Virus record (IMG/VR): IMGVR_UViG_3300025012_000028
Coordinates: 62,001 to 126,000 of that record
Reading direction: 5' to 3' (one strand)
Length of the DNA stretch: 64,000 bases
A program made the translations under genes and the position numbers. The stretch's first letter is position 1. Each line of letters starts with the position of its first letter. Positions 4,960 through 60,083 of the stretch are shown here, piece after piece. The notes below the pieces were generated by a model, which saw nothing but the letters and a program-made list of their open reading frames with translations, was not told the origin of the DNA and did not search any database.

Positions 4960-5643
4960 TTACCACTTGAATTGTTTAACCTTGTCTTGTGTCTCAGCAA
5001 TCGGAGGAGTTTCTTTCTCTTCAATGATCACAATCTTCTCTTCTTTTTTGCTGAACGGTTTCTTCTCTTCAGTCAGAACAGTGGTGGAGAAAGCAGCAAC
5101 TTTCCTTTCGAACAGTTCATCAAACGGAAGCTTCTTGGCATACTCAACCAGTTTAGATTTCTGCATGTCAGTATCAAGTTTAGAACAAGCTTCAGTAACC
5201 AGAGCAGCTTTTTCACGCATCTTGATTTCTTTCTTTGCTTCAACGAGTTGGTTGGTAACTTTGTTCAGTTCAGCTTTAGCTTCAACCAGTGCTTCTTCAT
5301 CCGTGACTTTCTTTTCGTCCAGTTGAATATTAAAATCTTCAACGATCTGATTGAAAGCTTTGAGTACACGTTCAGCAGTTTTTACTTTTACAGACTCTTC
5401 GATTGTCTTAGCATTTTCTTTGGTGAATTCTTCAACAAAGAGGTTGATATAATCGTCAAGTTTGTTGGTAAGGGATTCTTGGAACTGTTCAGTATCGATT
5501 TTGTTCTTAGCTTCCAGTTCTTCTTCTTTTACCTTAACGGCTTCGTTAATAGCATTTTCAAAAAGAACCGCCATCTGAAGTTTTACATCTTCAGTAAGAA
5601 CATCGCTCTGAATGGATTCAAAAAGTTTATCGATGTCGTTCAT
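4960..5643 (-). CDS. gp22: Prohead core scaffold protein (gp22-like)
   Basis: Coiled-coil acidic protein between gp21 and gp23; AAGGAG RBS before ATG 5643; late promoters at 5673-5680 and 5706-5713. Confidence 0.85.
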   Translation of the reverse strand: MNDIDKLFESIQSDVLTEDVKLQMAVLFENAINEAVKVKEEELEAKNKIDTEQFQESLTNKLDDYINLFVEEFTKENAKTIEESVKVKTAERVLKAFNQIVEDFNIQLDEKKVTDEEALVEAKAELNKVTNQLVEAKKEIKMREKAALVTEACSKLDTDMQKSKLVEYAKKLPFDELFERKVAAFSTTVLTEEKKPFSKKEEKIVIIEEKETPPIAETQDKVKQFKW

Positions 5644-5719
5644 GTTTAATATCTCTCCTTTGTACTTTGTTTTATTTATAAAATTGAAAAACTTTTTTCT
5701 AATTCTATTTATAAAAGTG

Positions 5720-6406
5720 TTAAATGTGTTTTGTCTTAATTTTGTTGATGGTTTCATTGAACAGTTTCAGGAAAGCGCCTTGACGATCCTCTTTTGAGAA
5801 TTGGTGTTCTAAAACTACCTTATCAACTTCAGCAACAATGATGTCGCGTTCCCTTTCTGTGAGCAGACCATTTTCAAAAACCCACTCTTTATTTTCACAG
5901 ATATTATCCAACAGACAGGAAGGACCGGAATTGTCATGAACCAGATCATTTGTTTTCCAAAACCAATCACCCTGAACAATCGAGTTCTTGACTGTGCCGG
6001 TTCCCCTAGTGGATGTTCCGACCTTAACACCCTCATCCATCAGAGACTTGATCACTTTACCAAGAGGAGTATCCAGAACTAATGAACGACCATATGCAAT
6101 ATTACCATCCATCTTAAGTTCTTTGATAAGGTGACTGACTCTCTCATAAGTAATATCTACATTCTGAGGATGTCCACATTCACCAAGTAATCTGTTCTGA
6201 GGAATTTCTTTCAGGTTCAATCTTTGTACATTCTTTTCTACTACAACTCTAGGATAGGTACGACCATTCCCATTTTTAATTTCACTGTCGGCGTGAGGAC
6301 CATTGAGCCAATATTTTTTGATTGGTTTACCATCATTGGTACTTTCGGTGATGATTTTGTTTTCCACACTCTGAAAATCAATTTCTTCTATCAGAAGTTC
6401 TGCCAT
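5720..6406 (-). CDS. gp21: Prohead protease (gp21-like)
   Basis: NGNGRTYP, LGECGHP, VSH, DTPLG, GTSTRGTG motifs. Confidence 0.95.
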   Translation of the reverse strand: MAELLIEEIDFQSVENKIITESTNDGKPIKKYWLNGPHADSEIKNGNGRTYPRVVVEKNVQRLNLKEIPQNRLLGECGHPQNVDITYERVSHLIKELKMDGNIAYGRSLVLDTPLGKVIKSLMDEGVKVGTSTRGTGTVKNSIVQGDWFWKTNDLVHDNSGPSCLLDNICENKEWVFENGLLTERERDIIVAEVDKVVLEHQFSKEDRQGAFLKLFNETINKIKTKHI

Positions 6407-20934: not shown

Positions 20935-21855
20935 CTATCTATCTATTTCAATATCATCTACAGTATCTACCCATTTACCAAAGTTTACAGTTTTGTTTGT
21001 ATAGTTGAGTTTGGTCAAACCATCCTCAATCATATCTTTTCGCCACGGATCAGTGCTAATGATAAAGATTTCTTTGATGGTAAATTTATCAATAAGAACC
21101 TCATTATACGATTCATTTTGTTGGTGTTTGAATTTCCGCGATATTTCTTTAATTTCTTCTTTATTGTCAATTAAGAACTGCTTACAAAAAATATAAAACT
21201 CATGTTGGATTTTATAAAAGAATGCGCTTATTAATCTGGACGTTTGATTATTTTCTTTTTTCAGTTCTTTTAATAATTTATAATTTTCCCACGGACTTTT
21301 ATAATTGCTTATTGAAGAAGATTTTAGACCCCCATGTTCGGAAACTTTAATATACTGAAGGGTTGGGTTGTCGTTTATAAATTGCTTAAACAAATTTTCT
21401 ATTAAAATACTTTTTGGATAATGATAATTAACATTCAGACCATTAAATAAAAAATGTACTCCTCTGGTTCCTTTTTCATCTGGAACCGAATAAATATCAT
21501 CATCACCAGCAACTACAAGTTCCCCACTTAATTTACATAAAACATCATAAGCCCTCACATCTTCTTTATAATTTCCTGAAAATGTTTGACCGATAATATT
21601 AGCAGGGTGGCTCAATGACGTAAAAGAACTGACACTTTTCCTAGTATGCTGAATCGCTTTTAAATTTCTAAGACCGTTGATTGTCGTTCCATGAAAGCTT
21701 TCTATTTCCATTTCCCCCAATATTTTTTTGGTTGTTGTGGGCGGAAGATAAAAATATCCGTCTTGTCTAACGATATGTTCAAGATAAGTTTTCTTCCACG
21801 AAATATCCCAAGGATCGATTGGTGCTTCAGTCAGGTATTGTTTGAAAGAAATCAT
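20935..21855 (-). CDS. Putative capsid-internal ADP-ribosyltransferase-like protein
   Basis: Leader MISFKQYLTE|A; FHGT...SVSSFT...YNEVL. Confidence 0.6.
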   Translation of the reverse strand: MISFKQYLTEAPIDPWDISWKKTYLEHIVRQDGYFYLPPTTTKKILGEMEIESFHGTTINGLRNLKAIQHTRKSVSSFTSLSHPANIIGQTFSGNYKEDVRAYDVLCKLSGELVVAGDDDIYSVPDEKGTRGVHFLFNGLNVNYHYPKSILIENLFKQFINDNPTLQYIKVSEHGGLKSSSISNYKSPWENYKLLKELKKENNQTSRLISAFFYKIQHEFYIFCKQFLIDNKEEIKEISRKFKHQQNESYNEVLIDKFTIKEIFIISTDPWRKDMIEDGLTKLNYTNKTVNFGKWVDTVDDIEIDR

Positions 21856-21857
21856 AT

Positions 21858-22760
21858 TTACCACTGTTCCTTTTCTGGTATATGACTTATAAACTCTATA
21901 AGATCAGGTAAAATTATTTCTTTTAATTGATATCGATCGTAGTCGTGTTGATCCATAATTTGAAACCATTTATCTTTATTAACAAATTTAAGCTGGCCTA
22001 GTTTTGTTATTACTTCCGTGATATGATCGACACGTTCTTTTTGTGGGCATATCAACATCACTTCTTTTATGGTGAAGTTGCTAATGAGATATTCATTATA
22101 AAAAATATGTTTCTGTTCTTCCGCATAATGTGTGTTGAAAATTTCTTCACGGTTTTCGTTTAAAAATTCGTCTAACATTTTATGATAGAGTTGAATGATT
22201 TTTAATTTATATCTCTTAACTGCATTTACACTGATACTGCTATTCAATTCCTCTTCGATGCGGTAGCTACTGGTGGCAGGTTCACCCATTATTTCTCGGA
22301 ATGTTTCCAAACACATATTAGTAACTTCACTTCTGAAATCTGTGAATAAAGATAAATTAGCTATACCCGCCCCTCTCATTCCTTTATGATCCGGAATTGA
22401 TCCTATATCACTATTCCCCGGAAAAATTAATGTGCCTTGAAGTTTAGCGACAACATCCATTCCACTATGTTCATCTTTATAATCGCCCGAAAAGGTTCTA
22501 AAAAGACTAGCCGGACTTTCAATCTTGGTGAATGAAGAAACGGTTTTTCTGGTGTGTTGGATTGCCCTCAGTTTATACAAACCGTCTATGGTAGTTGAGT
22601 GAAATGATGTGACCACTTTTCCAATTAGGTGTTTCTTAACGAGACTAGGTGGAAGATAAATTTGGGTTCTATCAAGAATTATCCTCCACGCATCTCTTTT
22701 CCAAGAAATATCCCAAGGATCGATTGGTGCTTCTGTCAAAAATGATTTAAAAGTGATCAT
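21858..22760 (-). CDS. Paralog of the preceding ART-like protein
   Basis: MITFKSFLTE|APIDPWDISWK; FHST...TVSSFT...YNEYL. Confidence 0.6.
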   Translation of the reverse strand: MITFKSFLTEAPIDPWDISWKRDAWRIILDRTQIYLPPSLVKKHLIGKVVTSFHSTTIDGLYKLRAIQHTRKTVSSFTKIESPASLFRTFSGDYKDEHSGMDVVAKLQGTLIFPGNSDIGSIPDHKGMRGAGIANLSLFTDFRSEVTNMCLETFREIMGEPATSSYRIEEELNSSISVNAVKRYKLKIIQLYHKMLDEFLNENREEIFNTHYAEEQKHIFYNEYLISNFTIKEVMLICPQKERVDHITEVITKLGQLKFVNKDKWFQIMDQHDYDRYQLKEIILPDLIEFISHIPEKEQW

Positions 22761-22768
22761 AAATTCTC

Positions 22769-24124
22769 TTATTTAAAATTAGGGATTGATATGTTGGCAA
22801 AGTTTTTCAATTCGGTTGTACCATAATCAATCAACATCATCTTAAAGAAGTCAGAATTGCTTTCGTTATCGGAATGCCAGATATTATCTTTGTTTATATT
22901 ACCGACATCCTGTGGATGTCTTGTCATGGCGTAGCGGTCAAGGTAAAGAACGTTCTCTTTCAGATTCGTGTCAGTCACTTGATGGATGGATGTGTTGTAG
23001 GGTGAATAAACCACACCAGTATCACCGTCACCATCATTATCACCCTGATATCCCACTAAGATGAAGTATTCCCCCACATCAGAAAACAAATCGCTGTAGA
23101 GGGGATATGTGCCAACCGTACCTACTTTATAGGGGTTCTGTTCATCCGAGTATGCTTTAGTCACCACAGCATTTGTCTGAAGGAATGCACAAGTAACCGG
23201 ATCAGCAAGAACAAAAATTGTCCTGTTACGTTTGGTGTCACGAACAATTTGCTCACCAGCTAAGAAAATGTTAACCACAAGATCATCAGTGACATCTTTT
23301 AATCCACCACCACCAACAGCAATTGAAGACTTCAAATCAATTTTGGTTGGGGGCAGAACAACATATGATGCGATAAATTTAAGATAAGAAATAAATTCCT
23401 TATCAATCTCCTGTCTGATTTCGTTGGCAATCGATTCGGAAACTAAATCAATTCCCTTTTCCTTATAAACTGCTAACCAATCCTGAAGTTGTTCCTGAGA
23501 CAGTTTGGATTTCAGTTTCCTAGATTTGGCTTTAATATCAACAGTTCTAGTTTCAAAACCAATGAACCTGACTTGGGTATTATCATCATTAGAATAGCCC
23601 ACAAAATTACCATCGGCATCTGTAGTACCAGAGTAACCATGAAACAATTTTTTGATAGCTGCTCTGTTAAATGTTGCATATGAGGCGGTGAATGTGGCAG
23701 AATTGAAAGTATCGTCTTTGACTGGAACACCCTCACCGGAAGTTCTGGCAACCAACAGTTTCTTACCTTCAATAAATCTAATGGTAAATTCAGATGAATC
23801 GGAATCGGCAGTCAATACATCATCGACACTCATACTGCTCACATCTTCTTCCACTACAATTAGGAAGGATGAATCAGGATGAGTATTGGTTTCTGCACTT
23901 GAACCCGAACCAGAATAAGTAGAAAAGAGACTAGCAATTTTACCGACCGGTCCTTTCAGTGGTTGAACATCTGCGACTTGACTGATTAAAGAGTCCAGAT
24001 ATATCTTTTTGAGTAGAGGTAAAATCAGTTGAGCAAAAACGGATGAATCGGCAGAAGATGATAATGCAGATTCTTTAAGAAAATTTTGCTCCAATTGCTC
24101 TAACATCATTTCTATTTTTCTCAT
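22769..24124 (-). CDS. Capsid protein paralog (gp24 vertex/gp23-like)
   Basis: VADVQPLKGPVG, KSRKLK, EIRQEIDKE, VYSPY; late promoter 24153-24160. Confidence 0.85.
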   Translation of the reverse strand: MRKIEMMLEQLEQNFLKESALSSSADSSVFAQLILPLLKKIYLDSLISQVADVQPLKGPVGKIASLFSTYSGSGSSAETNTHPDSSFLIVVEEDVSSMSVDDVLTADSDSSEFTIRFIEGKKLLVARTSGEGVPVKDDTFNSATFTASYATFNRAAIKKLFHGYSGTTDADGNFVGYSNDDNTQVRFIGFETRTVDIKAKSRKLKSKLSQEQLQDWLAVYKEKGIDLVSESIANEIRQEIDKEFISYLKFIASYVVLPPTKIDLKSSIAVGGGGLKDVTDDLVVNIFLAGEQIVRDTKRNRTIFVLADPVTCAFLQTNAVVTKAYSDEQNPYKVGTVGTYPLYSDLFSDVGEYFILVGYQGDNDGDGDTGVVYSPYNTSIHQVTDTNLKENVLYLDRYAMTRHPQDVGNINKDNIWHSDNESNSDFFKMMLIDYGTTELKNFANISIPNFK

Positions 24125-24164: not shown

Positions 24165-26570
24165 CTAAATAGAGCGAACCGGAATACACCAGTTGGCGTT
24201 GAACTTTACTGACCTTGCATCAACCTCTCCATTTTTAAAACTGAAAACAAACCTAACCCGATTAAAATCACCATTTTTTAGTTCAGGATCATCACACCAA
24301 CAAAACATATCTAAGTTTAAGTTCCTGAGTTTATTTTTATGTTGATATAACATCTGACATTCTTTCACCGATGGTAATCTCCAATCAGTAAAACCACCGG
24401 CGTTAAAATTGAAACAGAAATTGTCTGCCTCTTCGAATGTATAATATTCATTTCTATATTCGTAGAAGTTGGCAAGTGTCATAATGTTTTCGATTGTCAC
24501 TACGGAATTTTCATCCTTACCTTCCAACGCATTGTTATTCTTTTCAATCACGTCTGTCACCAACATCAGTGGTGGTTTACTGTCTTCTTCGAAGAATATA
24601 ATTTCTTTCCTTGCCATTTGTTGTTTTGTGATTGCTTCTTTAAACAAACCCATCAGTTCCAAAAATTGGTCTGATGTCTCAAAAATTCTTCTGAAATAAC
24701 TCATCAGAACATCCCACATAGGATAGAATAACACATTCTTTGTAACTCTGTCCGAGAATTTCAATTCATCTAATACCATATAAATGTGGTTTTCCATATC
24801 AACGGGACGTTTCAATTCGGCCTCGTATAATTTAAAAAAGTGTTCCGTCACTATCGGCAAGATTTTTACCTGTGGATAAGATACTAAAGTTCCGATGGGA
24901 GATGGAAGTTTATTTAAATCTTTCACACCAAGAAGATATTGGTTCAATACTTTAGTCAGTTTTTTCCCTTCGGGAGAATCTGGTTGCATATTGACAAATA
25001 TTTTGTAAAATTCGTTGGGATCTTTAGTAATGAGTTCTGGTCCGATCTTATTATAATCTATTTTAGAAATTTTGGAATCATTATTATCCTGATAAATTTG
25101 TTTCGTGTTCAGACAGTAGATACCTTCCTTCTTGCCCTGTTTAGAATCCAACCATTGCTGAACAGTCTCTCTAAATCCTTCTATATGTCTTCCATAAACT
25201 GATTCAGAAACATAAAGGAATGTATCGTCGGGATTATCCTCATTGTAATATGGGATAATGAGGTAACGAGCAATTGGATCTTTTAGTGGATCTTTACTTG
25301 TTGGATTTTTTTGTAGACCATATTCTTCGTATAGTTTTGGATACTCTTTTTTAATATCAATTAATGGAAAAATAGATAAAAATTCGTCCTTAAAATAAGA
25401 TTTCCAATTTAATGTAATTTTTGTTTTAGCATCTTGGAGTCCTAATATTTCAAAAAATAAATTTTCTTTCATTGAATCACTAATTTTTCCTACTTCATTT
25501 ATTTTTTTATTGATTACATAAGCAACCAAACACCCCTCATTAATCTCGGTTGGTAGATAATGGCGGTTACTCCCATCTTCCAGATTCTTACAACTGTGCC
25601 ATTCTTTATCATACGATTGCCCTAATATATCATATGGGTGTCGGCTAATTACTACTTCATATTTGTCCGTGTTATCATCTGCGACTTTACCCCTGAAACG
25701 TTCATTGAATTTTTGAAGTAAATCAGATTCACCTTTAGACTGTAATAGTTTCCCGATGCGCATCTGTCTAGAAGAATTAGTAGCCTGAGCTAGACCAGCT
25801 TTCCAATCTACTATCTTATAATCAAATTCACTTAGCTTATCATCAATCTCAACATAAAGATCAGAACTTAAATCCTTATTAATCGGAAGGAACTTGCGCC
25901 ACTTACCATCGAACCATTCTTTATACCGATGTTTATAATCCTCAGAAATACTTTTCCACCATGTTCTACCATAGATGTCTTCATTTGCACCATCTATCAC
26001 TTTTCTATTTGAACCTTTCTTAATCGGCATGTGCATCGCATTACGGTAAGTAGAAAGTTTTATGGCTTCTAACATCAATTTATCACCAATACGATCAACT
26101 AATGGTATATTCCTTTCATCACACCACTCTTTAATTACTTTTGCGTCTTGGTGAATATGTATATGATCTATATTTGGTTTAAACATAATTTCTACAATAT
26201 AATCACTCAGGTTTTCGATACTGGTAGATAAAATTCGTTCTTCCATTTCATCAATTCTATCTTGAGCAGATTTAAACCCAAAATATTTAAAATCATGAAA
26301 AGGTACTATCTTATATTTGTGAGAAAGTTTATTACCATCCAGAGCAATTCTAATATCGGATGGTACACCAGTCCCATGAACTCTTCGATGAAAGTTTTTA
26401 TCTCTGGTTACGGATATTGATGCACCACTTAACACAGAATTATATGATAATAAATCAATTGATTTTAAACTATTATCTTCCAAAATTGATTTACCATTTA
26501 AAATGGTGGTAAAATGGTAAACAATTCCAACCTGTTTCGCTTCGTTGATATAATTTTTAAATGGGATCAT
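24165..26570 (-). CDS. Multidomain putative internal head protein: ART-like, central SRHPYD domain, C-terminal DUF1566/Lcl-like
   Basis: MIPFKNYINE|A; YHFT...SVTR...EMEERI; GGFTDWRLPS..E...PVR. Confidence 0.65.
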   Translation of the reverse strand: MIPFKNYINEAKQVGIVYHFTTILNGKSILEDNSLKSIDLLSYNSVLSGASISVTRDKNFHRRVHGTGVPSDIRIALDGNKLSHKYKIVPFHDFKYFGFKSAQDRIDEMEERILSTSIENLSDYIVEIMFKPNIDHIHIHQDAKVIKEWCDERNIPLVDRIGDKLMLEAIKLSTYRNAMHMPIKKGSNRKVIDGANEDIYGRTWWKSISEDYKHRYKEWFDGKWRKFLPINKDLSSDLYVEIDDKLSEFDYKIVDWKAGLAQATNSSRQMRIGKLLQSKGESDLLQKFNERFRGKVADDNTDKYEVVISRHPYDILGQSYDKEWHSCKNLEDGSNRHYLPTEINEGCLVAYVINKKINEVGKISDSMKENLFFEILGLQDAKTKITLNWKSYFKDEFLSIFPLIDIKKEYPKLYEEYGLQKNPTSKDPLKDPIARYLIIPYYNEDNPDDTFLYVSESVYGRHIEGFRETVQQWLDSKQGKKEGIYCLNTKQIYQDNNDSKISKIDYNKIGPELITKDPNEFYKIFVNMQPDSPEGKKLTKVLNQYLLGVKDLNKLPSPIGTLVSYPQVKILPIVTEHFFKLYEAELKRPVDMENHIYMVLDELKFSDRVTKNVLFYPMWDVLMSYFRRIFETSDQFLELMGLFKEAITKQQMARKEIIFFEEDSKPPLMLVTDVIEKNNNALEGKDENSVVTIENIMTLANFYEYRNEYYTFEEADNFCFNFNAGGFTDWRLPSVKECQMLYQHKNKLRNLNLDMFCWCDDPELKNGDFNRVRFVFSFKNGEVDARSVKFNANWCIPVRSI

Positions 26571-26578
26571 GATTTACC

Positions 26579-26615
26579 TTGACATTAAATTAGAGTTGTG
26601 GTAATATTATTTATA
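26579..26615. promoter_or_regulatory. Sigma70 promoter (+) fused to late promoter (-)
   Basis: TTGACA(26579)-17 bp-TAATAT(26602) then TATTTATA(26608-26615). Confidence 0.85.
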
Positions 26616-27511: not shown

Positions 27512-29194
27512 CTAACGAATGAAACATTTAAATTTAGCACGGTGGGCAGTGCTGGTTGGGGGGGCCGAACCTCCATAAATCTCAGGAGGAATCTGATTTC
27601 CCAAAGACTCCCAAATATAGGAGGTTAGCGTAACGGGGTTTATACCATCGAGCCGTTTTGCAGTAGCCGAAGCAAAACCCCTAGTTGGTGCTGGCATTGC
27701 ATCCCCACCAATAACTGTATCTGCTGCCGCCATTTGAGCTTTTACCCATTCTTCTAAAGGCCAAGGCCATAAATTCCCTTGTGGCGTATTCCAATCAGTA
27801 CTGCCATATTCTGTTCCATCAATGCCTAATTTCTGTAAAATATTAGCTCCTACCTGCCCGCCATTTCCAGCCGTAGCAAGAGGAGAACCTGTTTCAATTC
27901 TAACCGGATAAAGTAAACCGTTTGTAAATGGATTTGTTGTTATTTTTGTCCCGGCATAGGTTCCAAGACTGGTGTTATAGTAATTTAAATTATTCCCTGT
28001 AAAATTCGGAGCTGAAAATTGAGCAACGGCTGTTCCGGTATCTACAATAATAGAATCATTTATAGATTGTTGTGGACTCCCCCCGCTATAATAACCCCAT
28101 CCACATCCGTCTGCACCGCATAAATCGGTACTTAGATTTACAAAAGTTGTCCCATTAGTCTGATAGGTGAAATTATCTGGCCGGATATGTGCCATTGTGA
28201 CTCGGTTAGAACTAGTGCCGGAATACAAAACACCACCCCCGATATTAATCCCTGCTACGTCAATAAGATTTATCCCAGTCGCCCCGTTATGCTGGCTAAA
28301 GACCAAGGACTTTCCGTCATTAATAGCAAGACTTCCTTGAATAGTAAACTCTTGATTATCTTCATTATTTTCTTCAGAAAAAGCAGCTTGAATAGCAGAA
28401 CCAGTTACCCAGTAGTTAGGATCTCCGTCTATAACAATGCTATTTAAAAGCGCAACTCCGTGGTGATGATAGATAACAAATCCGCCTATAGGATCATTAT
28501 ACCCGGCGTCTACATAATCTTGCCTAGCAATACATCTTCTGCATACAGAATGGGTATTTTTGCCCGTATAAGAATCATCGAACCATACCATGTTAAATCG
28601 GCCTTTTCCATTAATAATAAAATCCTCAAAAATTGTATAATCCGTTTCATCTACAGAAATACCAGGATTATTCCCGTCCTTATCTCCCTGTACTGCGCAT
28701 TGTTTGAAATACCAATGAGTCGGCCCCCATATATTTTGCGTTTGTTTAAACCAAAGACCCTCAAATTTTACGTAACTGGAAGAAACTTTGCTACCTTGCC
28801 AAATGCCAGTTTCAGTGGCACTCCCCGGAGTACCAAAGATTACTTTTAACGGTTGTGCGCAAGCAACTCCATTCTGACAAGGAATATTACGAGCTTTGAC
28901 TATTGTATACTTTGCGTCTCCTTCTCCTGTCCCAGGGCCGTTAGGCGGTTTATCTGTAGTTTGTATTACATCCGTAGCTTTGTTATAAATCCCATCATCA
29001 ATTGTAAGCACATCCCCGCTGGACATAGCACTCATAGCAGCCTGAAGGTTGTTATAACAATTAGCATTTGTCCAATTGCCAGCAATAGATTTGCCGCTAG
29101 TTTTTGTCCCTGTTGTGGACATATAAACATCGGCCGCAAAAGTTGTAGTCGGGAGTAATAACCAAACAAAGAAGAGAGCAGTTATTCTATCCAT
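27512..29194 (-). CDS. Signal-peptide beta-helix (pectate lyase-like) protein
   Basis: MDRITALFFVWLLLPTTTFA|AD; LQAAMSAMSSGDVLTIDDGIY cap motif. Confidence 0.65.
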   Translation of the reverse strand: MDRITALFFVWLLLPTTTFAADVYMSTTGTKTSGKSIAGNWTNANCYNNLQAAMSAMSSGDVLTIDDGIYNKATDVIQTTDKPPNGPGTGEGDAKYTIVKARNIPCQNGVACAQPLKVIFGTPGSATETGIWQGSKVSSSYVKFEGLWFKQTQNIWGPTHWYFKQCAVQGDKDGNNPGISVDETDYTIFEDFIINGKGRFNMVWFDDSYTGKNTHSVCRRCIARQDYVDAGYNDPIGGFVIYHHHGVALLNSIVIDGDPNYWVTGSAIQAAFSEENNEDNQEFTIQGSLAINDGKSLVFSQHNGATGINLIDVAGINIGGGVLYSGTSSNRVTMAHIRPDNFTYQTNGTTFVNLSTDLCGADGCGWGYYSGGSPQQSINDSIIVDTGTAVAQFSAPNFTGNNLNYYNTSLGTYAGTKITTNPFTNGLLYPVRIETGSPLATAGNGGQVGANILQKLGIDGTEYGSTDWNTPQGNLWPWPLEEWVKAQMAAADTVIGGDAMPAPTRGFASATAKRLDGINPVTLTSYIWESLGNQIPPEIYGGSAPPTSTAHRAKFKCFIR

Positions 29195-31205
29195 AATCTA
29201 ACCCCAGTAGTTAACGGAGAGTTGCTTTGAAGAGTCAAAGTGGTCGGGGGAAAAGAAGCAAAAGCACTATCTGCAAAAACCCCTAATGCTGAACCGCTAT
29301 GAGATTCAGTAGCCCAAGTAGCACTGCATTCGACCATTACATGATAAGTAGTTCCGGAAGTAACGCCGTAGTTACTAATAGTAACATCATTCCAGCCTAC
29401 TGTAGAGGTAAAAGCATTACCAGTAGAAAGCCTGGTAGAATCAGAAGTAGCTCCGTCATAAAGTGCAATTTCACAAGATGCAGAGTTTGTTACCATGTTA
29501 ACAGATAGTTTAGTAACATTCCCTGTTGCTCCTGCTACGATTGGAGAACCGGCAGTATGGGTAGCCCCCCAAGAATCGTTGGTGGTAAAACTACTAGAAG
29601 TCATAGCCGTGGGATAGTACCAAGCCCCACTAGCCGCTAAAGTTGTAGAGGTAAATGTATCGCTTACTCCACCAATAGTTATAACAGTATTTGTAGCCGT
29701 TGAATTACTGCTACTAGATGTATGTTGTGCTCTTACAGTATCTCCATTGGAAACTGAACCACTGCTAGTTACAAAACTGCCACTGCTGTTTATATCATAA
29801 GCCCCCCACTAACTGTTATTGTTGCAGGACTATTTACCCCTGCAACAGCTATACCTGTAGAGGTTATAAGAGTAGACAAAGCCACGTTCGTTTGATCTGT
29901 AAAGTTAAAAGCATCCGGAGTAGTATCTGTAGGTTCTTCAGGTTCCGAAGGGGTTTCAACCCAAATAGGATCTTGATTAGCCGTTACATAGTGGATACTA
30001 TTTAATGTCGTGATTTTTGCTACTGTTCCGGCAAGGAGTTTAATTCTAGTAGCGGTGTAGTTTTCAAAAGGAGTGGTGGATTTCATCACAGTAAAACCAC
30101 CACTAGTAGCAGCTACTAGGGCAATAGAATAATTTCCAAAAACACTAACTGTGCTTATTCCTTCTGTGTAGTCCTCAAAAGTTTGAGTAGAGGAAGAAGC
30201 CGGAATAAAAGCAAATCCGGATCGAATGAAAGCATCGGTGAAAGGAGTCGGAACTAAACCAGAGTTACTCACAAGAAGATTTATTTGATCCTGGATACTT
30301 GATGTTACTCCATTCAAATATCCAGCCTCAGTAGCACTAACGTTAGGGGGCCAGTCGGAGAGTTCAGAGAGAGAGGAAGCACCACCAGCACTAGAAGAAC
30401 CAATACGTCTACAATTGTTATCAGTCTCACAATAATTAATTGTGGTCATATTGTGAAAAATAACACCTTTAGATCTGGGTCCAGTATAAGGAACATTTCC
30501 ATTAGAAAAATCGCCCATATGTTCACCATTGGGAGTATTTGTTATAAACCCCTTACTAACTATTTCATTATCTTTGAGTGCAGAAGTCATGCGATCAAAA
30601 GCTATATTACCCGTTCCATCTGCTCCTGCTGGACCCTGTTCACCTTGAATTCCTTGTAAACCCTGTTCACCGGTATCACCTTTTAAACCTTGAATTCCTT
30701 GTAAACCCTGTTCACCTTGAATTCCTTGTAAACCCTGTTCACCTTGAATTCCTTGTAAACCCTGTTCACCGGTATCACCTTTTAAACCTTGAATTCCTTG
30801 TAAACCCTGTTCACCTTGAATTCCGGTTGCGCCAGCATTTCCGGTATCCCCCTTATCACCTTTAGGAATTCTAACATCGAAAATTGCTGCTGTCGGTGTA
30901 CCAACATTAGTAAACTGAGCATCACTACCCGCCGCACCAGTTGTCACACTTCCAACAGCGATTGTTGGTGTGGTTCCCGTTTGACCTTGATAATTATTCT
31001 GTATATAAGATAAAATTTGATTCATATTTATAGTATATGCTACACCCTTTCCATCCAATGAATTGTCTGAAGGTCTACCCATTGGCACTTTGTCGGTAGA
31101 TCTAAGTGGACCCACTACGAGTGGTGTATGGGAAATATCAGCAGCAAAAGCACCAATTGTTATTAACAAAAAGAAACTAACTATCACCCAACCTTCTTTT
31201 TTCAT
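29182..31205 (-). CDS. Signal-peptide collagen-repeat fibre/adhesin, split by a -1 frameshift at a G6 tract (29802-29807)
   Basis: GxQ collagen repeats; EAGYLNGVTSSIQ; DTTPDAF domain continues in the -1 frame into ORF 29182..29604. Confidence 0.75.
30633..30824 (-). repeat. Collagen-coding tandem repeats
   Basis: Repeated units encoding GEQGLQGIQ and GLKGDT. Confidence 0.9.
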
Positions 31206-48802: not shown

Positions 48803-48832
48803 GCAGTTCTATATTTTAGAACTGCTTATTTT
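48796..48832. terminator. Bidirectional intrinsic terminator
   Basis: AAAATAAGCAGTTCTA...TAGAACTGCTTATTTT. Confidence 0.85.
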
Positions 48833-49098
48833 TAGTGTTTTTTGAATCTAACGCCCCGTCTTTGTACAATTTTATGAAGCTTGCCATCAGCGCCATAACT
48901 GAAACCCTTACGTCTTGGCTTGTTCTTAATTTTCATTTTATATTTTTTAGAGCGTCTCTTCAGTTTGGATTTATTTTTCATTCTATAACGCTTTGCTAAT
49001 AATTTCTTTTTTTGTGTGAGATGGCGCACCTTTATTATTTTCTCTTCTATCACTTCATCACATAAAACTTCATTTAGAATACTTTCTAATATACTCAT
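48832..49098 (-). CDS. Lys/Arg-rich putative prohead core protein (gp68-like character)
   Basis: MSILESILNE leader; highly basic body. Confidence 0.55.
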   Translation of the reverse strand: MSILESILNEVLCDEVIEEKIIKVRHLTQKKKLLAKRYRMKNKSKLKRRSKKYKMKIKNKPRRKGFSYGADGKLHKIVQRRGVRFKKH

Positions 49099-49592
49099 TT
49101 CGAAAATGCTCCACCCGCCTCTTCTGGAAGTTTGTCTTCTTCGAATGCAGTTTCATCTTCTTTGGTAGGGGGTTCCTCGTAATATTCTTCATCCGGTTCT
49201 TCCCCAATTTCTGTTTCGATTTCGAAGTAATCGGAAAGAATTTTAATAATCTCCAAGCAGGTAGCATCATCAAACTTATCCGCATACTTGGCAAGAATCT
49301 CAGTAGAAATATCCACACTTTCATCTTCATCGGCAACCTCACCATCAACCAATGCTTCATTTTCCATGATATCCAGAATATTGAAACAGATGTCGCGCAA
49401 CTGTGATTGTGGGGTATCTTCATCTTCTACAACCGTTTCTTCCGGTTCCTCAGTAGGTTCGGTGGGTTCTTCAATAACCTCTTCCTCTTTAGGTTCTTCA
49501 GTAGGAGCGGGTTCTTCTTCAGACGAAAATGCACCTTTCTTTTCTTCGGTTTCCTCAACTGCCTCTTTTAAAATACTATCAAATATATTCAT
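49095..49592 (-). CDS. Highly acidic putative prohead core protein
   Basis: MNIFDSILKE|A; Glu/Asp-rich. Confidence 0.55.
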   Translation of the reverse strand: MNIFDSILKEAVEETEEKKGAFSSEEEPAPTEEPKEEEVIEEPTEPTEEPEETVVEDEDTPQSQLRDICFNILDIMENEALVDGEVADEDESVDISTEILAKYADKFDDATCLEIIKILSDYFEIETEIGEEPDEEYYEEPPTKEDETAFEEDKLPEEAGGAFSK

Positions 49593-49595
49593 TGA

Positions 49596-50162
49596 TCAAT
49601 CCTTTTTAGTTAAAGTATAATTATAGCGCCCATTGTCGCCTTTTACATAAGCCCATTCGATCATAGAGAATTTTTTTAACTCATTATAAACTCTCTTCTG
49701 AATCGAATCAAATTGATTTATAGCTTTATTTATATCTGATTTATTTCTAACCTTTGTACCCAGAACTTCATAACTCCCATAGTTCAATTCATTTTTAGTG
49801 TCGTTGGATATCAAAGCTTCCGGTTTGATATTATCATCTCCATCAACCAATATACTAGAAATGTGGTTGTTGATTTTATAATTCACCTTGGCTTTAGCCA
49901 GCGCAGCAGCAACCTCATTTATTTCAGATTGGGAAACACCAACAAAAGAAAGTGTGATTTTTATACTTCCTCGCAACGAAATTGACTTGTAGGAGTAACC
50001 ATGTCTAGAAGGTTCCACATATCCATCCGACGACTTTTTCTCCTTATAAGAGGCAAGAGAGGACTTCCTGAGAACAGATCGGATTGCCTTTATCAAATCC
50101 TCTTCCGTGTCAAACGATTTCTCGTTGAGTGCTTCCGATAGAATTTTATTTAAAATTTTCAT
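49596..50162 (-). CDS. Putative internal head protein
   Basis: MKILNKILSE|ALNE leader. Confidence 0.55.
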   Translation of the reverse strand: MKILNKILSEALNEKSFDTEEDLIKAIRSVLRKSSLASYKEKKSSDGYVEPSRHGYSYKSISLRGSIKITLSFVGVSQSEINEVAAALAKAKVNYKINNHISSILVDGDDNIKPEALISNDTKNELNYGSYEVLGTKVRNKSDINKAINQFDSIQKRVYNELKKFSMIEWAYVKGDNGRYNYTLTKKD

Positions 50163-50170
50163 GATGATCC

Positions 50171-52303
50171 TTATGACAAGTAGCAACTAAAATTAAAAGT
50201 TTCCGTTCCTTCGATCTTTGAGAAATAAAGTATAATTACACTATTCATGATCGTTCTTCCATCCGTGGTTATGATATCCAAATCCACATCACCATTATCG
50301 GAAGGGAGAACATAATTCTCATTGGCTAGAGATAAATCATATTTATTTAGAATGTTTTTAATTTCATCCAACGGCAACTGAGGAAGTGGTTGAGCTATGA
50401 TTTGTTTCAGTTCCTCGTTGGCATTGACTCTATCAAATGAAAGAAGTCTAGCAGTTTTCTTTTCGGGACGCTCGACCAGATTGTTTGAATCCAATTCGGG
50501 TTCTGGTTCCTCTTCTGGAATTAATTCTTCGGGTTCCACATCAACAGGTTCTTCTAATGATTCATCTTCCATTGGTGGTTCTTCACTGAAAGCACCTTCT
50601 AACATTATATTAAAAACATTAACATTTGATATTTCTTTACTATTTTCAATAAGATTTATATTTTTCCAAGCTTTGAAATTATCCCATTCTGGAAGAATAC
50701 CAGCACATATCATAGCAAGTTTATTTCCATATGCTCTTGCTTGATCTGAATAATCAAATGCAGTATTGGAAGTATATATAATTAATTGTGAATCTTTCCA
50801 CACTTTACAATCATACATCCCCCCGTCAACTTTAAAAACAGATACTTTAAATCCTTTGGGACATTTTACTTTTATATCTTGTTTATGGTCTTCTGTCTCA
50901 CATAAAGCACCTTCCAAAAGTTTCCCAAATAAATTCTTACTCTCAAATTTAAATTTGAGTTGTTCTGATTCATTATCTTTCATGTAGGTCAAAGAATCAG
51001 GAAGAGGATGAACAAATTTAAAATCGTGTGGGAAAGATTCTAAAAAGAATTCAATGTATGCAAACAAATCTGAATTATCTTCTTTAAAAGCTTCTAAATC
51101 TTCTTTAGTCCAATTGGAAAAAGCAGTATGATAGTCTTCGGTGTGTTGAAAAGATTGTTCATCTGGTTCTGAATCCGATTCCATCTCAATCCAATACATC
51201 CATTTGTCCTGCAATTGATCATAAAAATCATACACCGATTCCTTGGCTTCTTTTTCATGCCAAGCTTTATCTTCATCTTCAGTCGGCCACCAAGGATCTA
51301 AAAACATATCAACAAAACTTGGCATTCTATCGTCGGCCCAATTATCGTGGTGGTGGTATTTATGATTACGGGTGAAACTATATTTAAAAATATCAAACCC
51401 TTCTTTAATCACGCGATCCCAATGATTGATTTGCCATTCTTCTTCAATATTATAATCCTCATATTCATCCTCATCTCTGGGACGATTCAGATAATCATCT
51501 TCATTCTCCCAATTCTCATCCAACATTCTATGTGCTGCTGCTTCTTCATCAAAGATAAACTTTAGCGGAGTTCTTTCTTTTATCTTTCCATAATTTTTGG
51601 TGAAGTTAGGCAAATCTTCGATGATACTATATGGTTTGTTGTCGCTGCGATCATTATAATCCCTACTTTCTTGGATTTCGCCATTCTTAATATAAATCTG
51701 GTATTTTTCGAATGGATCATCCACATTGATGAACTGAAGAAGATCACCACTTCTGCTATATGCTCTCCAATGTGAATCGGTGTTTAGATATGCAGTACAC
51801 CAGTTTGCTTGCGGATTGGTCTTATATTGAGCACCTTTAATATTCCCTTCTTGTGTTAGGGTTTCAATACAAATCCATTCATCGGTAACATCAATGACTG
51901 TGATATCATCTGGCATATTGAAGATATCTTTTTCTTTTTTCTTCTTCTGCCTGTTGGATTCAGTTTCTTCTAATGTATCAACATAAGCAAAGAACTCTCT
52001 CCAAGTTTTGAATGAAGTGAAAGAGACACCTTTAGATAGGCGATGGAATTTTTCAAGATCATCTTTGATAGTTTCATGTTCAGCGACATGATGAAGGTCT
52101 AATTCTTTATCTCTCTTTATGAGATTGATAATACCTTCAAGATATTTACCACGCTGACCATTCTTTGAGGTAGGGTCTTGTGCTGCTAGATCATTGAATA
52201 CATCGAGAGGGATAAGTTTATGATCGACATATGAATCATAAAATTTTTGTAATGAAATCTCGATTAAAAATTGTTCTTCTAATATTTTGTGTAAAATTGA
52301 CAT
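50171..52303 (-). CDS. Large putative internal head polyprotein with WCT domain
   Basis: MSILHKILEEQFLIE; DPT....GKY; NWCTA; internal LLE|G, LIE|N, MLE|G; late promoter 52327-52334. Confidence 0.6.
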   Translation of the reverse strand: MSILHKILEEQFLIEISLQKFYDSYVDHKLIPLDVFNDLAAQDPTSKNGQRGKYLEGIINLIKRDKELDLHHVAEHETIKDDLEKFHRLSKGVSFTSFKTWREFFAYVDTLEETESNRQKKKKEKDIFNMPDDITVIDVTDEWICIETLTQEGNIKGAQYKTNPQANWCTAYLNTDSHWRAYSRSGDLLQFINVDDPFEKYQIYIKNGEIQESRDYNDRSDNKPYSIIEDLPNFTKNYGKIKERTPLKFIFDEEAAAHRMLDENWENEDDYLNRPRDEDEYEDYNIEEEWQINHWDRVIKEGFDIFKYSFTRNHKYHHHDNWADDRMPSFVDMFLDPWWPTEDEDKAWHEKEAKESVYDFYDQLQDKWMYWIEMESDSEPDEQSFQHTEDYHTAFSNWTKEDLEAFKEDNSDLFAYIEFFLESFPHDFKFVHPLPDSLTYMKDNESEQLKFKFESKNLFGKLLEGALCETEDHKQDIKVKCPKGFKVSVFKVDGGMYDCKVWKDSQLIIYTSNTAFDYSDQARAYGNKLAMICAGILPEWDNFKAWKNINLIENSKEISNVNVFNIMLEGAFSEEPPMEDESLEEPVDVEPEELIPEEEPEPELDSNNLVERPEKKTARLLSFDRVNANEELKQIIAQPLPQLPLDEIKNILNKYDLSLANENYVLPSDNGDVDLDIITTDGRTIMNSVIILYFSKIEGTETFNFSCYLS

Positions 52304-56952: not shown

Positions 56953-57393
56953 TTATTTCCTGAGTTCCATCACCCGTTTTTCCAACCACGAAACATATGA
57001 TTCACCGGCTACTCGACTGGTGGTATATTCTTCATACAGTTCATTTTTAGTTTCCGAGTCGATTGAGAAGTAATGAATAACTTCATCATTCCAATCAAAC
57101 CAGACATCTTCCTTTTTATTTTTGGGATAACAATTTGTTTCGTACACCTTCAGGCAAGGCTCACCATTTTTATCGTAGTAGTTTGGCTGATAGAACTCCA
57201 TGTTGTAATCTTCATATTTAGAAAAGTCACACGTCAAACAGATACAATCATGGTCAGTGTGGTTTTTATTGAGAGAAATGGTTGCTCGACAACCTTCATC
57301 GAACATTGTTTCCAGATTTTCAATCCTCTTTTTGAACGTCACTTCAAAGGTGTTGCATTTATCAAAATCCTTCAGTAGCTCTCTGAAATTCAT
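56953..57393 (-). CDS. Early hypothetical protein
   Basis: AGGAGG RBS; promoter TTGACA(57456)-16 bp-TATTAT(57434). Confidence 0.65.
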   Translation of the reverse strand: MNFRELLKDFDKCNTFEVTFKKRIENLETMFDEGCRATISLNKNHTDHDCICLTCDFSKYEDYNMEFYQPNYYDKNGEPCLKVYETNCYPKNKKEDVWFDWNDEVIHYFSIDSETKNELYEEYTTSRVAGESYVSWLEKRVMELRK

Positions 57394-57457
57394 AAATCCT
57401 CCTTGAGAAATTAATTTAAGATAGAAACATAATACCAGTTTAAATTAATTTGTCAAT

Positions 57458-57483
57458 AAAAAAGACACCTTCGGGTGTCTTTT
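57458..57483 (-). terminator. Intrinsic terminator
   Basis: AAAGACACC-TTCG-GGTGTCTTT. Confidence 0.85.
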
Positions 57484-57485
57484 CT

Positions 57486-57779
57486 TTAAACCCTTATCGT
57501 GTAGGTTTCTTGCCGTCCGGTAATTCCGTCTATACGGATTTCTTCCAACCCTTCCGCAACAAATCGGGTAGGTTCGATGCGTTTCCACAACATCACTTTT
57601 CCTCGCCATTCGAATCCTAAATTTGTTCCACCAATTTCATCATTCATATTTTTGATGATAATTGCATCGAATTTAAGGTAAGTGCGCCCACCTTCAAATT
57701 CAACCGGATCTTCTAATGGAGAAACACCTTCAAACTTTTTACCAGACAAAAATGCTAATGCCCTTTCAGACAACGACAT
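57486..57779 (-). CDS. Hypothetical protein
   Basis: Abuts dsbA stop. Confidence 0.55.
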   Translation of the reverse strand: MSLSERALAFLSGKKFEGVSPLEDPVEFEGGRTYLKFDAIIIKNMNDEIGGTNLGFEWRGKVMLWKRIEPTRFVAEGLEEIRIDGITGRQETYTIRV

Positions 57780-57780
57780 C

Positions 57781-58035
57781 TCAGACACATTTCTCTCCTG
57801 TGAGCACGTCAACAAGCTGATCGGTTTCGTTAATCTCTTCCAGAAACTTGGTCCGATCCTTCTGCCACTTGAAATACTGCTTCAGTGCATCGTTCAGGGG
57901 CTTTTTCTTGATGTCATGTTCTTTGCAGAATTCATCTTTCACATCCTTGATGTCGGCCATGATATCTTTGCGCTTATCATCAAGTTCCTTAATACAAGTT
58001 GCGAGTGCTACGATCTGTTCCTGAGTGTAATCCAA
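57781..58035 (-). CDS. dsbA: dsDNA-binding protein (T4 DsbA/GapR-like)
   Basis: IKE....K.I..DIKDVKD...E..I..K.LN pattern; 84 aa. Confidence 0.7.
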   Translation of the reverse strand: MDYTQEQIVALATCIKELDDKRKDIMADIKDVKDEFCKEHDIKKKPLNDALKQYFKWQKDRTKFLEEINETDQLVDVLTGEKCV

Positions 58036-58036
58036 T

Positions 58037-58567
58037 TTACTTCTCCTTCGTGAATTTAGATTTGTTTGCGGTCATGGCATCGTAAAGCCCTACCAGATTG
58101 TAATTGGAATTGCGTTTCTGAACCTTGGCAACCCAATAGGAAATGTTGTCACAATTAGTTTTGTCCCGTTCCAGTTCCTCTTTTCTCAGTTGAATCTTTT
58201 TCTCTTTGAGAGCTTCACCATCACGAAGAATATTTTCCCCTTTGTGATGGTTGTAATATTTTATCCCTTTTTCCATAGTGTAAAACGATACAGTTACAGG
58301 AAGGTTAAACCCTTTGTAGTACCGGTGGCAACGCTCATAGAAAATTGCATATTGATTATAGAGACTTTGAGGAATCAGAATGGTACGCACACCACTTGCT
58401 CTACCTTCAGCAATTATCATCGCTTTATTCTTGGTTGCAACATCTTCATCATCACAAAGGGAAAACCCAATAAGAATATTGTTATCAACACCAACAATAT
58501 TTGCTACCAGATACCCCTTGAATTCACCGTCCCTGATAATCCTTTGCCGCAGCTTGTTTTCGTTCAT
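58037..58567 (-). CDS. Hypothetical protein
   Basis: AAGGAG RBS; IGFSLC...D...K.KA..IA..R. Confidence 0.65.
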   Translation of the reverse strand: MNENKLRQRIIRDGEFKGYLVANIVGVDNNILIGFSLCDDEDVATKNKAMIIAEGRASGVRTILIPQSLYNQYAIFYERCHRYYKGFNLPVTVSFYTMEKGIKYYNHHKGENILRDGEALKEKKIQLRKEELERDKTNCDNISYWVAKVQKRNSNYNLVGLYDAMTANKSKFTKEK

Positions 58568-58645
58568 TGCTAATCTCCTTTTTGGTTGTAGGTTTCATAA
58601 AATTCTTTCGCTCGTAATTCATTATGCCGCTTGACTTTATAAAAG

Positions 58646-58948
58646 TCAAATATTATTTTCCACCATTGCAGCTTTGATGTATTCGATATAATCATTTTCG
58701 AATTGGTCGTGGGTCCAGTTCTGACATTCTTCCAACCCTCTGAGATAATTTCTAACCTGCATCCCTTCACGAAAATGAACAGGGTGTGGAATAAAAGATA
58801 TGCCACCTTTTAAATGTAAATTACATTTCACCTTCATGACTGGATCGACATCACCCTTATACAGTTTAGCGAGAGTACGGAAGAAATGTCTTCCCTCTTT
58901 ACCTAACCATTTATGGAGTTTGGAAACTATAATTGGATCTAACTTCAT
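58646..58948 (-). CDS. Hypothetical protein (PHPVHFREGMQVRN)
   Basis: ATGA overlap with upstream small ORF. Confidence 0.65.
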   Translation of the reverse strand: MKLDPIIVSKLHKWLGKEGRHFFRTLAKLYKGDVDPVMKVKCNLHLKGGISFIPHPVHFREGMQVRNYLRGLEECQNWTHDQFENDYIEYIKAAMVENNI

Positions 58949-59154
58949 AATGGAAATGTCCTAACTGAACTATATTGATGATATCCATCATGCATAAGTA
59001 TTGTTTTCTTTTGGATCAATTCATGTCTGGAAATATACATATTAGAATTAGAAATACACATGACCACAAACAAACATATTGCTCCCAAAAAAAAAGAATA
59101 TAACATTATCAATCATATAATCTCCTTTAATTTATAATTCTTTATTTGGTGGGT

Positions 59155-59331
59155 TCATGCTAATTGTTCTCCCAACAACATTGCCAGAACACGATGAACA
59201 CTTTGTTGGCCGTAACCTTTGGCGCATTGATTACACCAGTTCTGCAAAGCAACCTTTTCTTCTTCGGTTTCGATGGTCAGATGTAGATGAATTGGTTGGA
59301 ACTCAATTGGTTTTATAATTACACATCTCAT
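59155..59331 (-). CDS. Small hypothetical protein, possibly leaderless (58 aa)
   Basis: TTGACA(59366)-17 bp-TAAAGT(59343); ATG at predicted +1. Confidence 0.5.
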   Translation of the reverse strand: MRCVIIKPIEFQPIHLHLTIETEEEKVALQNWCNQCAKGYGQQSVHRVLAMLLGEQLA

Positions 59332-59372
59332 AATTTAACTTTACCTTCCTTTGAATTATTTGTCAATTAATT

Positions 59373-60083
59373 CTATTCTCCTTGTTCCACAACACCATTA
59401 ATATATTCCAACCACCACGGACTCATGAGATTGAAATCATAATTTGGTCGAATAGTTTCACCATCTTTTATAAAGAGAGTGCCATTCTTGAATTGTGGTT
59501 CTAGATCATTCCAGTTCTTTCCTTTTTGGAAACACAAATCGTGTAGATCGGGCGTTTTCTTCCCATGCAATTCTTTATGTGAATAAAGAGATTGTGCGAG
59601 CATCTGAATGGAGTTTCTAAGCCAATCCTGATATCTCCACCGGAAATAATTGATAACTTCCTCTTTGGGGATATTAAAACAACGAGAATCGAAATGTGCT
59701 GGCTGATAGAAACCTTTCATATTTCCATATGATATTGTAAAATTTACACTAGCCATCGATGCACTGATGGAACAAATCTTTTGAATATTATAATCAAAAT
59801 AAGCATCCGTATTCAGTTTATCGTAATCGGTAAGAAGCAAACTAATTTCGTCTGATTGAACATAACCCATCTTACATCCTTGGATATTTTCCACCAGATA
59901 TTTACAGGTTTCTTCCATTGATTTGATTATTTTCACATCGAACGGTTTCTGACAACCCTTAGTGAATGTGTGAAACGCCTTACCATCCAATCGAATAATA
60001 ACGGGAGTTCTGCGTGTAAGATGAAACCTAGAACGGTTTTCATAGTTTCCTTTCATGCGATCACCCAACGAATCATTTTTCAT
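59373..60083 (-). CDS. tRNA(His) guanylyltransferase Thg1-like
   Basis: RLDGKAFH, YVQSDEIS, QK..S..AS, FDSR, WR..D..RNS. Confidence 0.95.
   Translation of the reverse strand: MKNDSLGDRMKGNYENRSRFHLTRRTPVIIRLDGKAFHTFTKGCQKPFDVKIIKSMEETCKYLVENIQGCKMGYVQSDEISLLLTDYDKLNTDAYFDYNIQKICSISASMASVNFTISYGNMKGFYQPAHFDSRCFNIPKEEVINYFRWRYQDWLRNSIQMLAQSLYSHKELHGKKTPDLHDLCFQKGKNWNDLEPQFKNGTLFIKDGETIRPNYDFNLMSPWWLEYINGVVEQGE

Follow-up and report, generated by a model that had tools for sequence, protein, structure and literature searches.

What does a long gene set among the head genes of an uncultured phage encode, and is its product used as one protein or as several? The question is raised by the 64,000-nucleotide stretch of DNA analyzed here (the window), bases 62001-126000 of the 214.5-kb IMG/VR virus record IMGVR_UViG_3300025012_000028, in which a single open reading frame (ORF) of 801 amino acids runs from position 26570 to 24165 on the minus strand. 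The record is approximately 90% complete according to CheckV, its phage is a distant T4 relative, and the sequence of the gene is known solely from groundwater metagenomes of one study. A previous sequence-only reading had proposed a polyprotein of injected effectors with protease-type sites between its domains; all motifs that it quoted are present in the ORF. Our analysis suggests that the ORF probably encodes the precursor of a late, head-internal "polyvalent" effector, from which a short leader would be removed and which would be cut once more after E168. Packaging, both cleavages, injection and catalytic activity are predicted here by comparison with other proteins. The parts of the protein are as follows (all on the minus strand of the window; an arrow marks a candidate cut):

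26541..26570, minus strand: leader, residues 1-10 (MIPFKNYINE), with the cut expected before A11
26067..26540, minus strand: module with the ADP-ribosyltransferase (ART) fold, residues 11-168, supported by alignment, an AlphaFold2 (AF2) model and structure searches; motifs YHFT (18-21), SVTR (53-56) and EMEE (108-111)
26064..26078, minus strand: junction motif LMLE, residues 165-168, followed by A169
25056..26066, minus strand: central SRHPYD...WxSC module, residues 169 to ~505; motifs ISRHPYD (308-314) and W.SC (324-327)
25284..25508, minus strand: helical lineage-specific insertion, residues ~355-429, inside the central module and opening at KINE↓V (KINE 356-359, then V360)
24453..25055, minus strand: variable region, residues ~506-706, common to the closest relatives only
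24174..24452, minus strand: Lcl_C / DUF1566 domain (Pfam), residues 707-799; motifs WRLPS (730-734) and PVR (797-799)

The first piece of evidence is the leader. Leaders of this type are present in at least 19 genes of the phage and have the consensus M-I-(S/T/R/P)-F-K-x-(F/Y)-(I/L)-x-E. A strict pattern, M-x(1-3)-F-[KEQ]-x-[FYWM]-[ILMF]-x(1-4)-E, picks out 18 long ORFs with an ATG start from 1670 candidate starts; every one of them is on the minus strand, against a chance expectation roughly estimated at ~0.4. One further leader gene has a GTG start. The capsid-targeting sequence (CTS) of the T4 internal proteins (IPs) is MKTYQEFIAE (PMC8442874), and the leader of one of the paralogues reads MIRFKEFIAE. 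In T4 IPIII, the first 10 residues are sufficient for packaging, with positions 4 and 7 serving targeting and positions 8 and 10 serving processing (PMC9026906). The leader family keeps F4, F/Y7, I/L8 and E10, and the target has F4, Y7, I8 and E10, followed by A11. Since the conserved positions are those that govern the T4 CTS, the leader is, as judged from this comparison, a CTS of the T4 internal-protein type, and the earlier proposal of a targeting signal common to many genes holds.

The likeness to T4 IPI, IPII and IPIII includes the length of the leader (~10 residues), aromatic residues at positions 4 and 7, I/L8 and E10 followed by A, a protease of the gp21 family and a gp22 scaffold in the same genome, and diverse cargo behind a conserved leader. 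The scale is different: T4 has a handful of small basic IPs, whereas here at least 19 genes, many of them for enzymes, carry the leader, and the target is an 801-residue multi-module protein with a second protease-type site inside. Leader genes form clusters in four regions, all on the minus strand. The regions outside the window and individual genes with family matches, in coordinates of the whole record (genome G000), and the region inside the window are:

57000-60800 of the record, minus strand: leader-gene region (L003)
137500-147500 of the record, minus strand: leader-gene region (L004)
166000-168000 of the record, minus strand: leader-gene region (L005)
197500-200000 of the record, minus strand: leader-gene region (L006)
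138168-139220 of the record, minus strand: leader gene with ART-PolyVal and GNAT domains
141690-142508 of the record, minus strand: leader gene with an ART-PolyVal domain, GTG start
59011-59424 of the record, minus strand: leader gene with a GNAT domain
59421-59789 of the record, minus strand: leader gene with a weak, sub-threshold DUF1489 match
20935-22760 of the window, minus strand: leader-gene region

Several further leader-bearing proteins have no family match. The presence of the leader on ART-PolyVal, GNAT and other genes suggests that it marks a large arsenal of enzyme-like cargo. The region inside the window comprises two paralogues of ~300 amino acids (20935-21864 and 21858-22760, minus strand) that are 38% identical, share the leader and directly follow a gp24-like gene; neither has a family match. 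Homology between them and the ART-fold module was considered and rejected (BLASTP not significant; hhalign probability 0.2, E 0.27). A second, looser leader, M-x-I-L-x-x-I-L-x-E, is carried by four consecutive genes at 48832-52303 (minus strand): MSILESILNE, MNIFDSILKE, MKILNKILSE and MSILHKILEE. One of these genes has a borderline YscJ/FliF match (24.3 bits, cut-off 24.4).

Could the leader serve some purpose other than packaging? It might be a translation-initiation or recombination cassette, or an export signal, with the protein acting unpackaged in the infected cell. The leader-coding DNA is similar among the paralogues and could promote shuffling of cassettes, and the packaging of this protein is a prediction rather than an observation. 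However, synonymous codons vary while the leader peptide is kept, which argues for selection on the peptide. Moreover, this peptide fits the functionally mapped positions of the T4 CTS (PMC9026906), the genome contains the matching gp21/gp22 system, a leader-bearing homologue was detected in the virions of phage Atu_ph07 (see below), and the gene is located among head genes. Such a role for the leader is thus unlikely, and we would be surprised by it.

The processing machinery that a CTS calls for is encoded in the window:

5720..6406, minus strand: prohead protease, Peptidase_S77 (T4 gp21 family), 60.2 bits against a cut-off of 27
4960..5757, minus strand: T4 gp22-type scaffold (T4_CASP, E 6.5e-20) with several φ-x-E↓A motifs, φ being a hydrophobic residue
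3285-4895, minus strand: gp23 major capsid protein, 307 bits, ~30% identical to T4-like capsid proteins
22769..24124, minus strand: Gp23-family paralogue of 451 amino acids, 140 bits, immediately downstream of the target gene and probably a gp24-type vertex protein

The genes for the protease, the scaffold and gp23 follow the T4 order. The protease, which the sequence-only reading had named as the releasing enzyme, is the presumed processing enzyme for the precursor; the CTS proteins of T4 bind the scaffolding core. The gp23 and gp24-like proteins have the sites NYLME↓D and NFLKE↓S, respectively, shortly upstream of their conserved mature cores. These sites, together with the φ-x-E↓A motifs of the scaffold, are expected from the (L/I)-x-E specificity of T4-like proteases. 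The target gene is located between a small-terminase-like gene and the Gp23-family gene, within the head and packaging cluster, and the genes for the large terminase and the tail sheath follow the Gp23-family paralogue. The pairing of the target with a Gp23-family gene is kept in a relative, P0002, which immediately precedes a Gp23-family gene and itself follows neck genes. A comparison of the Gp23-family paralogue with cultured phages at E 1e-10 gave no match. Far from the head module, a Peptidase_S77-like match below the threshold (22.8 bits, cut-off 27) is located at 203418-203684 of the record on the minus strand (L002).

Indirect evidence of a virion location comes from a homologue. The central module has a homologue in phage Atu_ph07, AUZ95153.1, with the leader MQYTDLIE↓A and a calculated mass of 55.10 kDa; its neighbours have 11.75 and 11.30 kDa. 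Its own mass and those of the neighbours match gp394 of the published Table S5, with gp390 and gp393 nearby, which identifies AUZ95153.1 as gp394. This protein was found in purified Atu_ph07 virions by mass spectrometry, with 18 unique peptides and 41% coverage (PMC6102473).

Is the second site, LMLE↓A, a true boundary between modules? There are 20 [LIVM]xE triplets in the 801-residue protein, and because such triplets are common, a site is meaningful only via comparison with relatives. The closest relatives, P0002, P0003 and P0004, lack the ART-fold module; in them the leader, which ends in x-x-E↓A (MISFKTFLNE↓A is one example), runs directly into the residues found after A169 in the target. 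Since the end of their leader is in register with A169, E168↓A169 is a true module junction, and the statement that the YHFT...EMEE domain ends exactly at a protease-type site proved accurate and extends across relatives. When the N-termini of 103 central-module relatives are aligned, the last residue ahead of the conserved start (P1) is E for 86 of them and S for 14; 85 have L/I/V/F/M at P3 and 83 have A at P1', and their leaders have a median length of 10 residues. The ~14% of relatives in this central-family alignment (A3) with S in place of E (...SLS↓A) include Erwinia phage Yoloswag, which hints that the protease may have a different specificity in those phages.

The same rule applies inside longer proteins. 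Every copy of the ART-fold module in the relatives, in a single-module protein or internal, starts directly after φ-x-E↓(A/G/E/Y). Eighteen of these starts are internal, in polyproteins of 361-1829 amino acids with one to six copies, one of these polyproteins also having a Nudix domain; four internal starts of the central module obey the same motif rule. Thus, each of the 22 internal starts that the motif scan picked up in the relatives' polyproteins is preceded by hydrophobic-x-E↓(A/G). The metagenomic relatives P0005, P0014, P0020, P0025 and P0072 are polyproteins of 594-1829 amino acids with two to six tandem ART-fold copies and/or up to three central copies, and P0005 also has Nudix and DUF5661 domains. 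A second fused relative with both modules, L011, has LITE↓A at the same junction, with P2 changed and P3, P1 and P1' kept. The fused gene of L011 (676-1770) is interrupted between two called ORFs (954 and 1045), which could reflect a frameshift, an assembly error or a real break. In both structure models of the target, confidence is lower in the junction segment than in the folded domains on either side. Taken together, this is strong comparative evidence for LMLE↓A as a predicted gp21-type cleavage site maintained at module starts.

The module in front of this junction, residues 11-168, has two paralogues in the same genome and relatives in metagenomes. Models were built from alignments of 25 sequences for this module and of 106 sequences for the central one. 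In the 25-copy alignment, Y18, H19, S53, R56 and G79 are invariant, and T55, D78, E108 and E110 nearly so. The AF2 model of residues 11-168 has a predicted local distance difference test score (pLDDT) of 81 and a predicted template modelling score of 0.80. Foldseek ranks yeast Tpt1 first among its matches (E 2.4e-5), ahead of DarT, KptA, Scabin and pierisin. An independent all-against-all aligner, VIA-align, gave Tpt1 with Z 12.6 (110 residues, root-mean-square deviation 2.3) and DarT with Z 9.4 and 9.3, and almost all of its best 50 rows are ART-superfamily enzymes or NAD+-using toxin domains. By its model, then, the module has the ART fold, in agreement with the description of the first domain as ART-like. 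H19, S53-x-T55-R56 and E108-x-E110 are at predicted strand 1, strand 2 and the start of a later strand, as placed by motif order, so that H / S-x-T / E-x-E is a plausible, model-based candidate for the active site.

Among known enzymes, Tpt1/KptA and DarT are the best structural matches. These families have a similar hydrophobic-Y/H-H-x-T motif on the first strand. In contrast to this likeness, the sequences show no detectable homology, the phage module has no counterpart of the N-terminal RNA-binding lobe of Tpt1, and the E-x-E conserved in the phage module is, to our knowledge, not found in Tpt1. The biological setting also differs: the phage protein is a putative packaged effector rather than an RNA repair enzyme or half of a toxin-antitoxin pair. 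The other natural comparison is with T4 Alt. Packaged ARTs such as Alt, and CTS-directed cargo, are classical (PMC9026906), and the module studied here likewise has the ART fold and is predicted to travel in the head, to be processed by the prohead protease, as Alt is by gp21, and to reach the host by injection. However, it has no sequence relationship to Alt; it conserves H, S-x-T-R and E-x-E and is structurally nearest to Tpt1/KptA and DarT, whereas Alt belongs to the Alt/VIP2 family, which according to the literature modifies RNA polymerase and other host proteins, and Alt is not fused to further effector modules.

Membership of the Tox-ART-HYD1 family (PF15633) was considered for the module and rejected. 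The target does not reach the gathering cut-off, and 7 of the 25 relatives give weak, partial matches, the best with E 0.0039. In relative P0005, which has four copies, a score of 39.9 bits is reached only when the copies are summed, the best stretch covering profile positions 1-23 of 97. Profile searches of PDB sequences with the alignments of both the ART-fold and the central module gave nothing.

A natural scenario for these observations follows the T4 internal proteins. The 10-residue leader would bring the precursor to the gp22 scaffolding core inside the prohead, the route taken by T4 IPs and by CTS-fusion proteins, and the gp21-family prohead protease would remove the leader after E10. 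The same protease would most likely cut after E168, yielding an ART-fold enzyme of ~18 kDa and a remainder of ~73 kDa that would consist of the SRHPYD/WxSC module, the variable region and the Lcl_C lectin-like domain. The products would remain inside the head alongside the DNA and pass into the host when infection begins. There the ART-fold module could transfer ADP-ribose from NAD+ to a host macromolecule; the enzymes nearest to it in structure have nucleic acids as substrates.

Several observations weigh against this scenario. The phage is known from metagenomic sequence alone. φ-x-E triplets are so frequent that most of them cannot be cut, and one (INE↓G, residues 343-346) is inside a conserved core strand. 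The junction motif could be what is left of an ancestral leader that survived gene fusion. In phage SPN3US, the mapped cuts of the prohead protease, apart from its self-cleavage, yield N-terminal propeptides rather than released enzymes (PMC10052503). The ART-fold module reaches no Pfam ART model, and Tox-ART-HYD1 gives no match to it even at E 10. The equivalence of the catalytic residues was judged from motif order and predicted strands. Finally, it is not obvious what a lectin-like C-terminal domain would do inside a capsid.

Some of these points lead to the main competing explanation, in which the protein is packaged in the head, loses the leader alone and acts after injection as an uncut multi-domain polyvalent protein, LMLE↓A being a relic of fusion. 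A fusion event is certain, since in relatives each module occurs as a leader-bearing protein of its own. T4 IPs undergo a single cut, beside the CTS (PMC8442874), the SPN3US propeptides fit the same picture, and polyvalent proteins are often thought to work as single polypeptides (PMC5512222). However, only the minimal φ-x-E↓A of the ancestral leader is kept at the junction while the targeting part is lost, as expected if cleavage is under selection. The same minimal motif before all 22 internal starts, the retention of P3, P1 and P1' in an independently sampled fused relative despite the change of P2, and the position of the junction in a lower-confidence linker between two confidently folded domains also speak against a mere relic. 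The uncut protein is therefore the less probable explanation, with a real but minor chance of being true, and we prefer cleavage after E168. Giant phages such as phiKZ and SPN3US resemble the system studied here in that they package many ejection proteins and have a gp21-related protease that cleaves short motifs behind a Glu residue. The difference is that in SPN3US the mapped cuts other than the protease's self-cleavage remove N-terminal propeptides, whereas in the target and its relatives, with up to six tandem modules, the motif is located between folded enzyme modules.

How many pieces would be released depends on the central module. Its family has 2,466 cluster representatives at E ≤1e-3 and 988 at E ≤1e-10; the 520-residue query used for this count also held the ART-fold module, and nearly all matches listed fall in the central region. 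Members are found in jumbo phages of Erwinia, Dickeya, Ralstonia, Pseudomonas and Agrobacterium and in huge uncultured phages. R225, D314, W324 and C327 are invariant, S309-R-H-P-Y313 is nearly so, and the mature N-terminus itself is conserved (consensus A-L-K-P-S-Q-Y-R). The model of this module has pLDDT 84.7. A Foldseek search of it against PDB gave nothing, and ESM Atlas and BFVD returned uncharacterised phage proteins only. The best VIA-align match, to GNAT-type acetyltransferases with Z 5.1, is below the noise level of the tool and is not taken as a fold assignment. Our literature search for the SRHPYD motif found no paper. The central module is thus a large uncharacterised phage family without a convincing relative among solved structures.

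The sequence-only reading had assumed a further boundary at KINE↓V. This site opens an insertion of ~70 residues (pLDDT 59-75) that is absent from P0002 and P0004; the conserved strands and blocks flanking the insertion fold as one domain, and the SRHPYD domain runs on to ~505. KINE↓V was therefore rejected as a domain boundary. Accordingly, of the idea that domain boundaries coincide with LxE sites, the part concerning LMLE↓A is exact, and the part concerning KINE↓V does not stand, as that site is inside the central domain; the evidence favours two released pieces, the ART-fold module and the remainder, rather than three. Other sites in the C-terminal half, such as VIE↓K (672-675), are not proposed as cuts: their conservation across four relatives is only partial, and their P1' is atypical. 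At the edge of the insertion, a low-depth alternative contig from one sample (runs X2 and X3) differs at 8 of the 78 bases of 25215-25292 of the window; this segment overlaps the insertion by ~9 bases, and a contig break is located at the same place.

The last part of the protein raises the question of a diversity-generating retroelement (DGR). The assignment of the WRLPS...PVR domain to DUF1566 was correct: Lcl_C/DUF1566 (PF07603) scores 36.0 bits for residues 680-801 alone (cut-off 34.9) and 31.2 bits for the full-length protein, and relative P0003 reaches 40.0 bits. Residues ~506-706 have no family match, and a feature search of 505-705 gave no lead. Searches of the separate parts of the protein against Pfam, NCBIfam and PHROGs gave nothing beyond Lcl_C. 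Lectin folds of the DUF1566 type are frequent DGR targets, and the domain could then be the variable part of a diversified receptor-binding protein. However, RVT_1 has no match at E up to 0.1 in the 214.5-kb record, ~90% complete with a small gap, and the C-terminal coding region has no second copy in it, the best other blastn match being 24 nucleotides long; the absence of a reverse transcriptase and a template repeat, noted previously for the window, thus extends to the whole record. Positions 24165-25244 of the window show no differences among contigs from three samples, although contigs hide rare variants. The leader is of a head-internal type, and the context is not that of a tail fibre. 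A DGR target is therefore unlikely, and of the alternatives discussed we find this the hardest to credit.

The protein can also be compared with the polyvalent proteins described by Iyer et al. (2017, PMC5512222). In this class, a single polypeptide combines disparate domains, its gene is located among late and structural genes, and it is predicted to enter the host together with the DNA; ARTs are the commonest modifying domains of the class (PMC5512222), and ART, Macro, NADAR and Nudix domains are often packaged in the virions of myoviruses (PMC5512222, PMC9503650). The target likewise combines the ART fold, the SRHPYD/WxSC module and Lcl_C in a late, structural gene context, and paralogues in this genome carry the ART-PolyVal domain itself. 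For polyvalent proteins, release of domains has been proposed to occur via an embedded metallopeptidase, which is frequent though not universal (PMC5512222). Here, in contrast, family searches found no peptidase in any part of the 801-residue protein; instead, module starts have prohead-protease-type sites and the leader is a T4-type CTS. Another difference is that both the ART-fold and the central module are outside Pfam models.

What looks new is that protease-type sites mark each effector module and that polyproteins of up to six modules stand behind one leader. T4-like and jumbo phages may run cassettes of injected effectors, each module with its own φ-x-E↓(A/G) start, as observed here for the ART-fold and the SRHPYD/WxSC families, used singly or in polyproteins of up to ~1,800 residues that share one leader and would be cut by the prohead protease in the capsid; for this generalization we consider the arguments evenly balanced. 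If it is true, this is a polyprotein strategy run by the head-maturation protease and not by embedded peptidases. If the junctions are cut, head-maturation proteases double as processing enzymes for effector polyproteins, and a single leader could bring several host-takeover enzymes into the head in a fixed ratio. The analysis also defines two module families for which Pfam has no model: an ART-fold family that resembles Tpt1 and DarT, and a very large phage family in which both the propeptide and the mature N-terminus are conserved. The combination of the leader and φ-x-E↓A provides a simple sequence rule with which to predict the proteins that uncultured T4-like and jumbo phages package and inject.

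Several minor observations concern the region around the gene. At the DNA level, the region has no match in cultured phages. A candidate promoter is located upstream of the start codon:

26608..26615, minus strand: TATAAATA, 38-45 nucleotides upstream of the start codon

We take this octamer to be the T4 late-promoter consensus. It occurs 69 times in the genome, compared with ~42 copies expected from composition, and is thus weak evidence for a late promoter of the gene. Two further genes are located upstream of the target on the minus strand: one, at 27512-29194, encodes a protein of 560 amino acids with a hydrophobic N-terminus and no family match, and the other, at 29790-31205, encodes a protein of 471 amino acids with collagen-like G-x-x repeats.

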